Positions 48,017-56,107 of a DNA stretch of 64,000 nt are shown piece after piece. Position numbers and translations under genes: made by a program. The DNA lies in assembly GCA_020891255.1 (NCBI GenBank), contig BQFW01000004.1, forward strand, positions 1,922,001-1,986,000, written 5' to 3'. Source of the stretch: Entomortierella parvispora E1425 (lineage: Eukaryota > Fungi > Mortierellomycota). Below the pieces are notes generated by a model. The model did not search any database. It was not told where the DNA came from and was given only the letters and a program-made list of their open reading frames with translations. How positions within the stretch are numbered: the first letter of the stretch is position 1; each line of letters starts with the position of its first letter.

Positions 48017-49114
48017 ATGTCTGAAGACCACTGCAGTACCTTCGACCAGGGGGCATCTCTCATTCTTCATCTGTCTCCAGAGCTGATGTTCTTACGAGAT
48101 TATCTAGGCCGCCATTTGGACGATCTGAAGGAGATTCTCAACCTGCGCGAGCTTTTCGTTTTAATGAGAGCCAAAGCTGATTACCACGCGGTGATGAGTG
48201 ATTTCTTGGAAGTTGTGAGCAAGTACGTTGGCGATACGCTCGAGGGGCTACTCGAAATTGTTGCCAATCTCTCCGAACACGTGGAAATATATGATTGTGA
48301 ACTCCCTGACTTCATCCTTCGTGCAAATATCACGCTTCAAGGAATTGACGATTTCAGTAACAAGGTCCAGGGCCATGTTGACCGACAGACTGCCGCCTGC
48401 GAGGACGTGGCCGCACTTTCCTTACGGATGAGGGACCTCATAAAGGAGTATTTAGAAAATATCGACACCCACACAGAGAAATCTACAACTTTGCGCATAA
48501 CCTCCATCGGTCTTGCTTTATTGGGCACTGTCACGGTTGGTATTTGTTTCACGCCATTGGCCATAGGCCACAGAGCTGTGGTGGGCGCTGCCGCCCTCGT
48601 GGCTGGAGGTGGTGGTACCATTGGGTGCGAAGCCATTGCTCAGCATGACCAGCGCAAGGCCAAAACCTACGCCAACGCGATCGCTAGACTCGTCGAAGCT
48701 CAAGGATACAACGACTCTTTGAAGGAGCACATGCTTGCAATCCTTCAAAAGTTGAAGAAGAGCAAGAGACATCTCGAGAAGCTTAAAGAAGAAACAACGA
48801 GAGCCATGCCTAGCCAGAGTTCTGACGAGGAAATTGATGCCATTAGTGAAAGGCAGGTGGCTTACCGCCTTGCTCAGAAGGAGGCCATGGAAATTAGAAA
48901 GTTGTGCATTGAGATTGGCCAATATGCTGGAACTATCGAAACCCTGCGAGTGGAGGTGAAGGTCAGACGGCAGAAGTTTAACAGCTTTGAGGGCAAAGAA
49001 GAGAAGAGCGGCAAACTTAAACAGATTGTCTGCCATGAAGAAGAAGACGGGCAGGAACAGCTTACCATCTGTGAGGGACGCAAGCTGATCACTCACAAGG
49101 AGAAAGAAGAATAA
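48017..49114 (+). CDS. Hypothetical all-helical protein with a central Gly/Ala-rich hydrophobic hairpin and coiled coils (possible alpha-pore-forming or membrane-active protein)
   Basis: A 365-aa ORF from ATG 48017 with no introns. The segment IGLALLGTVTVGICFTPLAIGHRAVVGAAALVAGGGGTIG is flanked by heptad-like helices. Confidence 0.7.
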   Translation: MSEDHCSTFDQGASLILHLSPELMFLRDYLGRHLDDLKEILNLRELFVLMRAKADYHAVMSDFLEVVSKYVGDTLEGLLEIVANLSEHVEIYDCELPDFILRANITLQGIDDFSNKVQGHVDRQTAACEDVAALSLRMRDLIKEYLENIDTHTEKSTTLRITSIGLALLGTVTVGICFTPLAIGHRAVVGAAALVAGGGGTIGCEAIAQHDQRKAKTYANAIARLVEAQGYNDSLKEHMLAILQKLKKSKRHLEKLKEETTRAMPSQSSDEEIDAISERQVAYRLAQKEAMEIRKLCIEIGQYAGTIETLRVEVKVRRQKFNSFEGKEEKSGKLKQIVCHEEEDGQEQLTICEGRKLITHKEKEE

Positions 49115-50082: not shown

Positions 50083-50725
50083 ATGGCCAACAACAGCAAT
50101 GACCCTCGGTTTAACAACGGTCGTCCAGGGTTTGGGCCAGGCCAGGTCCCGCCGTTTATCGATCCCCGCAATCCCAACCAGAACAACCATAATAACGCGT
50201 TTCCAGGCCAGCAACAGCCTCGATACCCGATCCCACCTATCCGCTTCCCTGGTCAACCGCCTCAGCCTTTCCCTGGCGCGCCTCCACCCATTGGTGGTCC
50301 TCGACCAGTCGGTGGTCCCCCCATGGTCCATCAGCCAGGCCAATACCAAAACGTGCACCAGCAATTTATGAACCAGCAGCACGGCCACTTCCCTCAGCAA
50401 TTGCCCACGGGTCAAGCCTTCCACAACCTGGTCCACAGCCAAAACATGGTCCACAGCCAAAACATGAATATGTATCCCGGCCGAACCAGCAGCGGTAACA
50501 GCTCCCCAGTCGCTAGTCCAACGCAGCCACAGCATCAGCAGCAGTTTCCGCAATCGCCTACAAGTCCCTCACGGACAGCACCTAGTCGCAACCTACCTCC
50601 CATCCCTGTCGAGCGTCAACCCTCTCCCAAGGGTGAGAGCGAGAGTTATGTCTCGGTCGCGCAATCCATTGACGAGAGTATCGCTATGGCTAACAAGTAC
50701 AGTAAGAGCGGCGACAGCGACAGCG

Positions 50726-50770
<45 letters not shown>

Positions 50771-53700
50771 GCAACAGCAACAGCGGCGAGACTGAAAAGA
50801 GTGATGATCACCAATCTCTGCATTCAGGATTCAGAGAAGTTCGTGATACCGTGGAAGCCCTTCGAGTGGTTGAAGTCGAGCAGTCTCTTATTGAAAAGAC
50901 ACTCCACAAGGGTGTTGATATGGCTGTGATGGCCTCGACTACTGCTACAACAGGAGAGTCGTATATGACGCAAGGTGTCACCCTTGCCAACAAGATCCTC
51001 GATGGCAAGGCTCAAGCGATTGTGAGCAGGATCCAGGAAAACCCTGCTCTTGGTCACCTTATCCAATTGGCGGACAAGCTTGTTGACATTGGCAAGGCCG
51101 TGCCCTTCATCGCCCCAGCTTTTGTGATTCTGAAGGTACATCACAGACCCGACTGAGTCCCTGGCTCTGTTGCCATCATCTTTATTTTACAATCGTTTTA
51201 ACGTTTTCATTTGATGCATGTTAATTTTAGATTATTATCGACGTGGAGAAGAAGGCCAGAGATGCGGACGCCAAGTGCACAGATCTTTTGGAGCGCATCA
51301 ACTTTATGGTCAGCAACATCACAGTTTTGGAAAAGGTCAAGGCGATCGATCCTCTCGTTGCCGTGATCGAGAAGATGAACAGCATTTTGAAGAGCGCCGC
51401 AACCCTGATTCAGACCTACCGCAAGCAAGGTGCCATTGCTAGAAGACTGAACATGTCCAATAGCGCAAACTTTACTGGCATGGCCGAAAAGATATCAAGC
51501 TGCTCCCAGGATTTGATGCTCAGTCTACAAATTCAGCAAACTGGAGACATTTCCATTCTCACCCGAGGTGTACCCCAAGATCAGCAGGACGTGGAAGCCC
51601 AACAGTTTGTCATGTCCCATGGTGGTCAGGATGCTGTTAAGGTAAGGAGCTCGAGCACTTGTGTCGCTTGCATGGAGGGAAATCCATTATATTAACACTC
51701 ATTGCTCTGCCTCTTACACGGAACAATAGCACAACCCAGAGTTGGTCGAAGAATACGCCAAGAAAATGCAGTTGACGATGAGCGATCAAGTCATGGAGCA
51801 AATGCAATGCAGTATGGAAGATCTGTTGGGAGAGAATCAATCCCGTATCGAGGCTCTGATGTTGGAAAACTCGAGCAATACTGTCGCCATGACGATCAAG
51901 GCCATGGCAAATGAAGCTCGTGAGCAGGAGGCGGAACAACGCCTCACCTGCCTTCAGTGCGACAAGGAGTACCGCGAATCGGGCAATGGACCTCAGGCTT
52001 GTTCCTTCCACAAAGCCACTGAGATTGAGGGCTCTTTCTCGTGCTGCGGCAACAGAGCTGGCTGCACGTTCTCGAACCATAGATCGGCCCATCATTGCGA
52101 ATACCCCTACACCAACTTCTTCAAGTTTGCCTCTGCCATTCTTGGATACACGGATACAAGAGACGAGTGGCTCGCGCTCGAAGAGCAGGATCTCATGACG
52201 AACGGGTACCAACGCGCCTCTGTCGCCAAATTGATCCGCTGGCGTTCTCATATCGAGAGACTCTCCAAGAACATGATGGTGATTCATGTCGGTCGTATCG
52301 CTTTCGACTCGCCTTACTACTTTCAAGTGTTTGATCTGGAAGCGATGAAGAAAGCAAATGCAAAGGTTCAGAGCACAGGGGCGACACTGATCTTCAGGAG
52401 CGACAAGTCTGAAGAGACCTTTTCCATGGCAGAGTGGACCTTGGATGGGTCTGGCACCATCAACGGTGTGAAGTTGACTGTCAAAGTAGCGACAAGCGAC
52501 ATTGCCAGTGTGAGTGTGGCGCCAATCGATATCGAGACTGTGACCTTGTCGGGTGACGTAAAAGTCATCTCCAAGGCAAAGTTCACGGTATACAAGCCTG
52601 CAGAGTCATACAAATTCCCGGAAACCATTCACAAAGGACATATACTTAGAGCCAAGCCTCTTCGCAAGGTCAGAGAGTTCAAGGCCAAGACCAGTTTGCC
52701 TCTCGTGGCAATTCCACAGGGTCCTATGGTTGCCAATACAGAGGGACAATTCGTCCGCAACAACGCCGAGAAATTCCAAGGTCGCCTTCGATTCTTCAAC
52801 AAGGCACCTCCAACAGGCCACACCTTCGTAACCTTGGCTAGTGCAAAAGCCGAGTTTCGCTTGGTGGGAGATGAGGAATATCAAGAAGTCGAGTCTTTGA
52901 CTCTGGGGGACGTCAAGTTCCCAGCCGCGCTTGGACCAACACAGACACTTGATATTCCATTTGAGGCGATCGTTAAGCGCACTCCTGAGCAGGCAAGCCT
53001 GAGGCAGAACTGCTGGGGTTACGCCATGATCGCTATTCATCGTCCAGCCCGTGTGCGATTGACGTTCAAGGACATTGAAGGAGAGGAGTTCGTTTTGGTT
53101 CAAGAGTATATCTACAATCCCAGAGGTTTAGCCGTCCAAGAACCCACAGACTTGCTCTTTTTGCATATGGATAACGAGGTGGACGGTTCTCGTTCAGTAG
53201 TCCGAGTCAAGAAATCAGAGGGTGACACTATTGTGAACGTCAATTCAACCAATTACACGGCTGAGGCACTCAACAAGGTCGTCTACAAAGCTGAGCAGGA
53301 AGGAAAGACAGAGGTTGATCTTCAAATTGGGCGGGATGCTGGCCCATACAAGTGGGACGCGTGGGCTTTGGTCGATCTGAACTGTCGTCGTGTTTATGGA
53401 TTCAAGGTTATGTTGAACCCTGGATCAACGAGAGAGAAGAAGAACTCAGCAGCTCTCGGATACGCACCTTGCCCCCTCTACGGAGGTGATGATATGGAGG
53501 AGAGACCCATTCGTTACGCCGAGGAGCACGTCCAGTTCCCAGAGATTGAACCTGCTCCAGAAATCGAAGTCGTGGAAGATGACACTGTGGATGACGAGAA
53601 AGCTGCAGCAACAGTCCAGGCTGTCGTCGCCCCTGTCATGTCAATTGCCACTGCAGCATCATCTTCAGTCTCTGCTGCCATTACGGAAGTTTCCAAGGCA

Positions 53701-53832
53701 ACTAGTTCCCTTGATACGGCCGTATTCTCCGCAAGCATGAGCACTTTGGACAAGAGGCTCGAGTCGTTGGATATTAACGTAGCACGTATGGCTACGGCCT
53801 TGGAGAAGCTCGTTGACATCCTGAGCCATTAA
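50083..53832 (+). CDS. Hypothetical 1188-aa protein: P/Q/N-rich N-terminus, MLKL-N-like four-helix bundle, Cys/His Zn motif, beta-rich C-terminal domain; exons 50083-51135, 51231-51641, 51730-53832
   Basis: Two phase-0 GT-AG introns join three ORFs. Motifs: IGKAVPFIAPAFVILK-IIIDVEKKARDADAKCTDLLERI..LIQTYRKQGAIARRL and CLQCDKEY..N..ACSFH..SCCG..C..H. Confidence 0.8.
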
Positions 53833-54004: not shown

Positions 54005-56107
54005 TTATGATCGAGTGTTGAGGAAGATGGCCATTAGGATCATACCCCCGCCCACGCAGACTAGCATCGCAACTTTGAGAGCCAGCCCGAATCGTTTGTC
54101 CTTTCTCAGTCTAAACATCCCCCGTCCTCCTGCCCTTGGCCCTCCCGCCATAGATGAGGAAGACGATTGGGTCATGGAGTGCATAGAATGACCGAGGAAA
54201 TAAGATGAGTTTGAAGAGGAAGCGCCCCCTCCACCGTGTAGATGTTGTAACGAAGAGCCAAATTCTAGACGACGGCTTCGACCCATCTTGGCTGCTGCTG
54301 AGCGCGTCTGATCCGGATCGCCAAGGAGCATCAAGATGCCGAGCCAGATGTTTTGCAATTGTTCCGAGAGTAGGACGAGCCTCTCATTGTGGGTTTGGTA
54401 CTGATCCAGAACCTGTGCGACCTCGAACGGCTGCATTGGTTCCCGTGAAAGCAGGTTGTTGAGATGACGACTCTTGAGTATCCTGAGCTTGTTTCCTCGC
54501 TGGAGTTCAGTTGGATCCTATTTTTTTTTTTTTTTTTTTTTTTTGCAGTCAGAAACCTGGATTAGCTCATGGGTTGCCACCAATTTTCTTCTTCCGCATC
54601 CAATTCGGCTATTCCATCCATCTCGCGTCCACCCGATGGGTACCTGATAGATGTCCAGTACAAGTTGTGCCCGTTCCTGAAAATGACTTTGGACACTCCA
54701 AAAGGCTACGATTGCGTCCTTGAGCTCGGTCGCAATCTTGACCCGATCCTTTGTTGCCTGTTCCGTCCGCGGCTCTGCTGGAATCTTGTAGATCCGCGGC
54801 CAACATTCCATGGTGAGATCTGTAAATGCTTGTGCTACCATTTGACGCTCTTCTTCTAGGTTCACTGGTGCCTTTTCCTTGCCCTTCATCCTCCTCTTTT
54901 CCTCAGGAGTGGGTGAAGGTGATTTTTCGCCTCGTTCGATCCGATCTTGGTCATCGCCTTTGCCACTGCCACTGCTGTCTTCCTCTTCCGTTTCGTCGTC
55001 TGCATTCCTAGGTTTCCTCTTTTCACTACGCGAAGATAAGAACGACAACCGACTAGATCGAGGTGGTGGTCGATACAGGGTCATGGCCTCCAGAATCTGA
55101 TCGTTTAGTCCCTCTAATTGCTCTGTGTACATGGCCAATTGACGAAAGACAAGCCGAAAGTGTTCGTGATCTAACCAGGGCGTAATATGTTGAGGGGGTG
55201 GTGGTGAAAGTACGGGAGGGGGTGGCGGCCTCGTTGCTTCCAAGGTCACGGCTGAAGCTCCTGTTGGAAGGTCAATGGACGATGATGAGTGGTGGTAGAC
55301 GGAAGCTGGAGGTGTTGCAGCGGTCAGGATCGTCGTTGTTAGACTGTGCCGTGATGTCGCCGTCGAGGGCCTCCGAAGATGTTGTGACACTGCTGGAATG
55401 ATGGTGGGTGTTGTGGATACAAATGAAGGGGTTCCCGATCCTGGAACTGGAACGAATGGACTCTCATCTCCTGGCCGCCTCTGAAATTGTTGCTGCTGAA
55501 GTTGCTGTTGTAGTTGCTGCTCCCTGGGTGTCATGCCTGTTCTAACCTCGATGGGTCGGACTGGAGATGATTGAAGGAGTTTAGCAGCTGCAAGAACAGA
55601 GGCCCTAGTGTGTGCAGAAACAACCTCAGATACAATCTCATCGACAAGTAGTGCAGTGGCCTGGATATGCTCATCACTGTCGTCGTCGTCATCGTTGTCA
55701 GCCTCGTTGCCATTGTCCTCGTCTTCTTCTTCTGACCGGGTGATGCGATCTATGATGACGGATTGTTGTGCGTGGGTGCGACTATCCCTCCGTGAACTGG
55801 TTGCCGATGCTGGTTCTCTGGAGGGAGTGCTGATGGTCTGAACTGGGGTTCGTTTTACTACGGACGCCTTCTTGCCCACTTTCTTTGACAGTTGGTACTG
55901 GGGTGTGATTACGGGAACAGAGAGGGGAGCGTGTATAATGGGAGTAGCTGAGAGTGCAGGTGCAGGTGTGGGTGCGGGTGTTGAGGATTGCCCCGTGTCC
56001 TTCAGACTTTCTGATTCTTCAATGTCGCTTGGACTTGGGTTTTTCTTTAGCTCGGCTTCCTCCGCTGGTGTGAGTCGGCTAGAGATTGCTTTCTTGGACC
56101 TGTCCAT
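54005..56107 (-). CDS. Hypothetical tail-anchored protein with a disordered N-terminal half and helical segments; the 5' end may extend upstream
   Basis: ORFs 56107-54518 and 54436-54005 are probably joined by an intron (IYQ|GTACCC..TAG|DPTELQ). C-terminal TM FGLALKVAMLVCVGGGMILMAIFL is followed by only NTRS. An in-frame acceptor (CTAAC..CAG) lies just upstream of the ATG. Confidence 0.6.

Follow-up and report, generated by a model that had tools for sequence, protein, structure and literature searches.

An MLKL_N-type helical bundle joined to a CHORD-like zinc motif and an unnamed beta-rich module: a probable non-NLR cell-death or immune switch in Entomortierella parvispora

We analysed a 64,000-nucleotide stretch of the Entomortierella parvispora E1425 genome (contig BQFW01000004.1, positions 1,922,001 to 1,986,000; hereafter the window) and describe a forward-strand gene encoding a helical bundle of the MLKL_N type, a CHORD-like zinc motif and an unnamed beta-rich module. 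As other eukaryotes have this module attached to a TIR domain instead, this gene probably represents an undescribed non-NLR cell-death or immune switch. Combining open reading frames with splice-site reading, we obtained three exons between window positions 50083 and 53832, encoding 351 + 137 + 700 = 1188 amino acids, the same length as the spliced protein proposed in an earlier sequence-only reading of this DNA. A paralogue on contig 7 of this genome has its introns at the same two places, as do both the orthologue and the paralogue from Gryganskiella. The nearest proteins are all from Mortierellaceae, with 60-76% identity across genera; the best of them, from Gryganskiella cystojenkinii (P0001), is 76% identical over exon 3, and its N-terminus is 57% identical to exon 1. 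In public records, the orthologues are labelled only as 'hypothetical' or 'mixed lineage kinase domain-containing'. All searches were run on single exons or sub-slices rather than on the full 1188-residue product. The features of the gene are as follows.

50083..51135, forward strand: exon 1, 351 amino acids, from the ATG to a GT donor (gtacat follows)
50083..50607, forward strand: disordered N-terminus rich in Pro, Gln, Asn and Gly (residues 1-175) with conserved short blocks, from composition and the P0001 alignment
50713..50784, forward strand: lineage-specific run of Asp-Ser and Asn-Ser dipeptides (residues 211-234), from the translation and a gap against P0001
51037..51135, forward strand: extra helix and hydrophobic first bundle helix up to the intron (residues about 319-351), the most conserved part of exon 1
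51136..51230, forward strand: intron 1, GT..AG, phase 0
51231..51641, forward strand: exon 2, 137 amino acids, followed by a gtaagg donor; bundle helices 2-4 and the start of the linker, matching Pfam MLKL_N
51642..51729, forward strand: intron 2, GT..AG, phase 0
51730..53832, forward strand: exon 3, 700 amino acids plus stop
51730..51936, forward strand: long linker helix (exon-3 residues 1-69) in the position of the MLKL brace; predicted by AlphaFold2 as a helix at 19-69 (50 residues)
51937..52107, forward strand: CHORD-like zinc motif, C-x2-C-x13-C-x2-H-x10-CC-x5-C-x4-H-x3-HH, from conserved ligands and hhalign to the genome's own CHORD domains
52108..53589, forward strand: unnamed beta-rich module of about 494 amino acids, predicted as an alpha/beta subdomain, an immunoglobulin-like sandwich and a second alpha/beta subdomain
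53590..53715, forward strand: acidic disordered linker with a predicted local distance difference test score (pLDDT) of 30-52; its length differs among homologues and is long in the paralogue
53716..53832, forward strand: C-terminal amphipathic helix (AlphaFold2 helix 663-699), then the stop codon

The sequence-only reading had proposed an MLKL-like bundle, and the helical text that it quoted is present in the protein, divided by intron 1. Exon 2 alone matched Pfam MLKL_N (PF22215) with 34.0 bits over profile positions 21-138 of 142, and the gene scored 33.3 bits in a six-frame scan of the genome with the same model, for which the gathering cut-off is 27 bits. The first 20 profile positions fall in the hydrophobic end of exon 1, right before the intron. 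RPW8 and DUF7792 scored below their respective Pfam cut-offs on the exons, and the Pfam HeLo and HeLo-like models gave no match. Using phmmer with exon 2, we found the N-terminal domains of human and mouse MLKL in the PDB at E values of about 0.03, while a profile of 57 family members matched residues 25-142 of mouse MLKL (4BTF) at E 4.8e-4.

The bundle fold was modelled on a homologue from Dendrothele bispora (P0087), residues 147-1096 of which lie in a single exon and the bundle of which is 53% identical to window exon 2. AlphaFold2 modelled this bundle (L006:6821-7813) with pLDDT 74-94 over the helices, and the first Foldseek match was the MLKL N-terminal domain (2MSV, 6ZZ1; probability 0.99), with target-normalised template modelling scores of 0.55-0.65 and E values of only 0.09-0.3. 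The model places an extra helix (32-52) ahead of the part that aligns to MLKL residue 1, and this helix resembles the additional helix hG described for the MLKL-like domains (BaMLKL) at the N-termini of basidiomycete NLRs (PMC9815663). Together, the hidden Markov model (HMM), profile and homologue-model structure matches support the assignment of the helical domain as a predicted MLKL_N-type bundle. The lack of a structural match had been named beforehand as one of the outcomes that would refute this proposal; the comparison on the homologue model, taken with the HMM evidence, did not refute it and returned MLKL as the best natural match.

Exon 3 appears to encode a composite C-terminal unit. 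In an AlphaFold2 run on this exon with 57 homologues, the beta-rich region (residues about 127-620) reached pLDDT values above 90, and the zinc region was modelled with low confidence. An earlier estimate of a beta-rich domain of about 550 residues was right as to the fold and too large in extent, the remainder being the acidic linker and the C-terminal helix. Since Pfam has no family for the module and the PDB no specific structural match to it, it is a candidate new domain. The sole PDB match of exon 3 by phmmer was Nicalin (E 0.45), which we took as chance; NCBIfam returned only noise on all three exons, and ESM Atlas gave no usable match for exon 3. Aligning the first beta subdomain to the third with hhalign yielded E 0.011, compared with 0.26 and 0.37 for controls, which is only suggestive of an internal duplication. 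Mean identity among orthologues is 74% in the linker, 73% in the zinc motif, 56-63% in the beta subdomains and 78% in the C-terminal helix. Conservation is highest in the bundle, the linker, the zinc motif and the C-terminal helix. The terminal helix is similar in MLKL-type homologues, in short homologues and in several TIR-type homologues.

The Cys/His cluster, for which CHORD-type spacing had been suggested, occupies exon-3 residues 74-122 (nucleotides 51949-52095). Among 57 homologues, ten of its Cys/His positions show either no variation or at least 90% conservation, and the spacing across the family is C-x2-C-x13-C-x2-H-x10-12-CC-x5-C-x4-H-x3-HH. Pfam CHORD (PF04968) gave no match to the window motif alone, even at E up to 10, and the sole match in a genome scan was a genuine two-CHORD gene on contig 14 (L007, G000:C14:1157539-1158141; 94 and 90 bits). 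Nevertheless, aligning 128 distinct family motifs to the genome's own CHORD domains with hhalign gave a 34-column alignment running from the first C-x-x-C as far as the CC pair, with 93.4% probability and E 2.6e-7, although Cys-rich profiles can inflate such scores. A homologue from the holozoan Pigoraptor chileana (P0216) scored 24.2 bits on Pfam CHORD (cut-off 24.6), and the family profile weakly matched CHORD-containing protein 1 in the PDB (E 0.16). The suggested kinship thus stands as likeness, below the level of the Pfam CHORD model.

Compared with CHORD proteins (RAR1, CHORDC1/Chp-1), the window motif has the same order of zinc ligands and a common N...aC-x-[FY]-H ... CC core; its first half aligns and its second half is shorter. 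It differs in having C-x2-C where CHORD has C-x4-C, a loop after the CC pair of about 5 residues instead of about 15 in the genome's own CHORD domains, an extra HH and a single copy. We therefore refer to it as CHORD-like, that is, as an apparently divergent relative rather than a member of CHORD. The CHORD domains of RAR1 and CHORDC1 bind HSP90, and this relatedness could point to an HSP90-linked client or adaptor, in which the motif would attract HSP90 or SGT1-type chaperones, the protein would chiefly govern or respond to chaperone state as a proteotoxic-stress switch, and the bundle would provide its output. We consider such a role improbable, given the shortened second half of the motif (x5 versus about x15), its failure against Pfam CHORD and a protein with no CS or SGT1-like domain.

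The N-terminal tail is, as the sequence-only reading had it, a Q/N/P/G-rich region; over residues 1-175 the composition is 22% P, 14% Q, 11% N and 9% G. The further description of this tail as prion-like was not supported. By the usual criterion, prion-like regions have little proline and 30 or more Q/N within 80 residues, whereas the maximum here is 25 Q/N in any window of that size; Pfam gave no match in the region, and in the comparison with P0001 short blocks are kept while the Asp-Ser/Asn-Ser run is absent. The tail is lineage-specific, as Agaricales homologues have a peroxiredoxin-6-like AhpC/TSA domain ahead of the bundle instead (L006:6001-6646; P0087-P0098, P0103) and the Pigoraptor bundle is fully N-terminal, beginning at residue 10 of P0216. 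On this evidence, the tail is less likely a prion domain than a regulatory region with short motifs. The P-x3-T-x2-C peroxidatic motif is missing in 9 of the 10 Agaricales AhpC/TSA domains, which are therefore probably dead enzymes, and we set aside a redox relay through this fusion on the same grounds. With a pseudo-enzyme preceding an MLKL-type bundle, this arrangement is reminiscent of MLKL and its pseudokinase.

Amyloid control of fungal death domains is known for HET-S and HELLP (PMC12881547), and a low-complexity stretch of this composition could in principle act on the bundle through amyloid or condensate templating. In this protein we regard that as very improbable: the stretch is 22% proline with fewer than 30 Q/N per 80 residues, it is replaced in Agaricales and absent in Pigoraptor, no fungal amyloid motif was matched in Pfam and there is no NLR gene next door. 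Moreover, the fungal amyloid motifs known so far are C-terminal.

We investigated the distribution of the family using a beta-module profile (alignment A2) built from six intron-free DNA slices, namely the window gene, its paralogue, three Mortierellaceae genes and the Dendrothele gene. Searching 1.84 billion representative proteins, we obtained 250 matches at E up to 1e-3, 136 at up to 1e-10 and 72 at up to 1e-30. Besides Mortierellaceae, the members come from chytrids (Rhizophlyctis, Powellomyces, Polyrhizophydium, Clydaea, Terramyces, Cladochytrium, Phlyctochytrium, Polychytrium and Nowakowskiella), from Agaricales (Coprinopsis, Marasmius, Collybiopsis, Pholiota and Dendrothele) and from Sphaerobolus, and outside fungi from Pigoraptor, the choanoflagellate Monosiga brevicollis, Rhodelphis and the streptophyte alga Mesostigma. 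Among 40 long representatives, Pfam detected MLKL_N in 13 and TIR_2 in 10. Using HMMs made for this analysis, we found the bundle in 108 of 247 fetched proteins and TIR in 13, with none carrying both.

In MLKL and TIR types alike, the zinc motif, which begins CVQC, lies directly ahead of the beta module and the terminal amphipathic helix follows it. Zinc motif, beta module and C-terminal helix thus occur as a set, preceded in some proteins by an MLKL_N bundle and in others by a TIR domain. In a tree built from the beta module, the TIR-type proteins group together on long branches (Shimodaira-Hasegawa-like approximate likelihood ratio test support 98), so that a single ancient exchange would be enough to account for them. 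TIR_2 had no match in the E. parvispora genome. Short family matches of about 590-650 amino acids begin at the zinc motif and may be gene models that missed upstream exons. Two proteins, P0216 from Pigoraptor and P0224, show the order MLKL_N, CHORD, SHOCT-like motif and then only the middle of the beta module (profile positions about 260-435). The M. brevicollis protein XP_001747323 (P0199) combines PWWP, TIR, zinc motif and beta module; among the papers searched, it is mentioned only in a PWWP survey (PMC3457860). The papers searched, which deal with fungal cell death and with the effector domains of NLRs, do not describe this architecture.

In animals, plants, fungi and bacteria alike, both four-helix bundle and TIR domains act as death effectors that are switched on by oligomerisation (PMC12881547). 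The pairing of one cassette with two such unrelated effector domains supports the core inference of an effector joined to a sensor, and lends comparative support to the earlier proposal that a sensor domain gates a death domain. The non-NLR architecture also proposed is borne out, as Pfam detected neither NACHT nor NB-ARC in the window protein or in any of eight homologues of full length. We tentatively read the cassette as an ancient eukaryotic sensor or regulator that may drive an interchangeable MLKL-type bundle or TIR domain, in a non-NLR, non-kinase branch predating the fungi-animal split; we would put this at a little short of even odds.

The arrangement of the window protein invites comparison with three kinds of known system. 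Like animal MLKL and plant AtMLKL1-3, it has a bundle, a helical linker and a large C-terminal regulatory domain, and the bundles are homologous in sequence. Unlike them, it lacks a (pseudo)kinase, the exons having no match to a kinase family at E up to 1 in Pfam; its regulatory part is instead the CHORD-like motif and beta module, its bundle is internal with an extra helix in front, and it ends in an amphipathic helix. Fungal HeLo and HeLo-like proteins (HET-S, HELLP) and BaMLKL belong to the same bundle superfamily. In contrast to HET-S and HELLP, the C-terminus of the window protein is a predicted helix with no Pfam match to HET-s, sigma or PP-type motifs, and it differs from these proteins and from NLR N-termini in having neither a NACHT/NB-ARC match nor an adjoining NLR gene. 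Finally, SARM1, TIR-NLRs and bacterial TIR defence proteins share the logic of a single death effector joined to a single regulatory module, and in the sister subfamily an N-terminal TIR_2 precedes the same zinc motif and beta module. The window protein itself has no TIR, and its regulatory module is unrelated to ARM, LRR or NB-ARC.

In the genome, MLKL_N has two matches only in the six-frame Pfam scan, the window gene and its contig 7 paralogue (L003, G000:C7:420628-425142, reverse strand). The paralogue is 40% identical in the beta module, and a long Pro/Ser/Ala-rich insert separates this module from the terminal helix. The neighbours of the window gene are GDE1, an unrelated helical open reading frame, an unnamed gene and DOP1; the Gryganskiella orthologue is likewise flanked by a GDE1-type gene and DOP1, and the Actinomortierella orthologue adjoins DOP1. 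Downstream, an unnamed Ser/Pro/Gln-rich open reading frame of 529 amino acids (window 54518-56107, reverse strand) has a 68% identical counterpart in the same place in Gryganskiella (L001:12640-14280). Upstream, the helical open reading frame (window 48017-49114, forward strand) is intronless and encodes a Gly-rich hydrophobic hairpin; we found no homologue of it in the Gryganskiella orthologue locus (19.8 kb) or in any other locus fetched, and it is therefore not a conserved partner of the MLKL-like gene. A conserved two-gene cassette with this frame is thus unsupported, whereas the downstream gene is kept.

We propose that the product of this gene is a regulated executioner that attacks membranes, of the MLKL, HeLo-like or RPW8 kind, and that its control lies with the conserved C-terminal unit and not with a pseudokinase, an NLR or an amyloid motif; we assign this reading a probability of about one half. 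We infer that, at rest, the bundle would be held inactive by the C-terminal unit, that is, the helical linker, CHORD-like motif, three-part beta module of about 494 residues, acidic linker and amphipathic helix. The beta module or zinc motif would sense a trigger, which might be a ligand, a modification or a partner such as HSP90 at the CHORD-like site. Oligomerisation, mediated by the linker and terminal helices, would follow, and the hydrophobic first helix of the bundle would then engage the membrane, leading to ion leak or cell death. The Pro/Gln-rich N-terminus may serve as a lineage-specific regulatory tail with short docking or phosphorylation motifs.

Several observations weigh against an executioner. 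There are two copies only per genome, with apparently one-to-one orthology and conserved GDE1/DOP1 neighbours, and conservation among orthologues is even, without a hypervariable surface. This low copy number, synteny and evenness suit a housekeeping or stress protein more than a receptor in an arms race. In addition, the bundle lies inside the protein, with its start near residue 325 of 1188, whereas classical executioners bear it at a free N-terminus, and the beta module yielded no ligand, enzyme site or known fold. The copy number and the internal position of the bundle also speak for a non-lethal housekeeping or stress protein, with a role in, say, membrane repair, ion homeostasis or the trafficking of endomembranes, in which the bundle would be a regulated lipid- or membrane-binding module and the beta module a scaffold rather than an immune sensor. 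The synteny in Gryganskiella and Actinomortierella and the evenly spread identity across Mortierellaceae genera agree with such a role, and immunoglobulin-like and appendage-like sandwiches are common as protein-binding scaffolds. Against it, TIR substitutes for the bundle in the sister subfamily, and we know of no membrane-trafficking role for TIR; the patchy fungal distribution (Chytridiomycota, Mortierellaceae and some Agaricales) is, furthermore, typical of dispensable defence genes. We consider a non-lethal membrane or stress role a serious rival to the executioner, albeit a less likely one.

Most of what is known about regulated cell death in fungi comes from Ascomycota and concerns NLRs, amyloid motifs, gasdermins and HET/TIR domains. 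The family described here is conserved in early-diverging fungi, including the Mortierella group, whose members are cultured and studied, and it offers a third control logic for MLKL-type bundles, outside kinase and NLR contexts. Its TIR-bearing sister family in chytrids and a choanoflagellate provides a built-in comparative test. If true, the reading of the cassette as an ancient regulator of interchangeable effectors would mean a branch of innate immunity or regulated cell death older than the split between fungi and animals.

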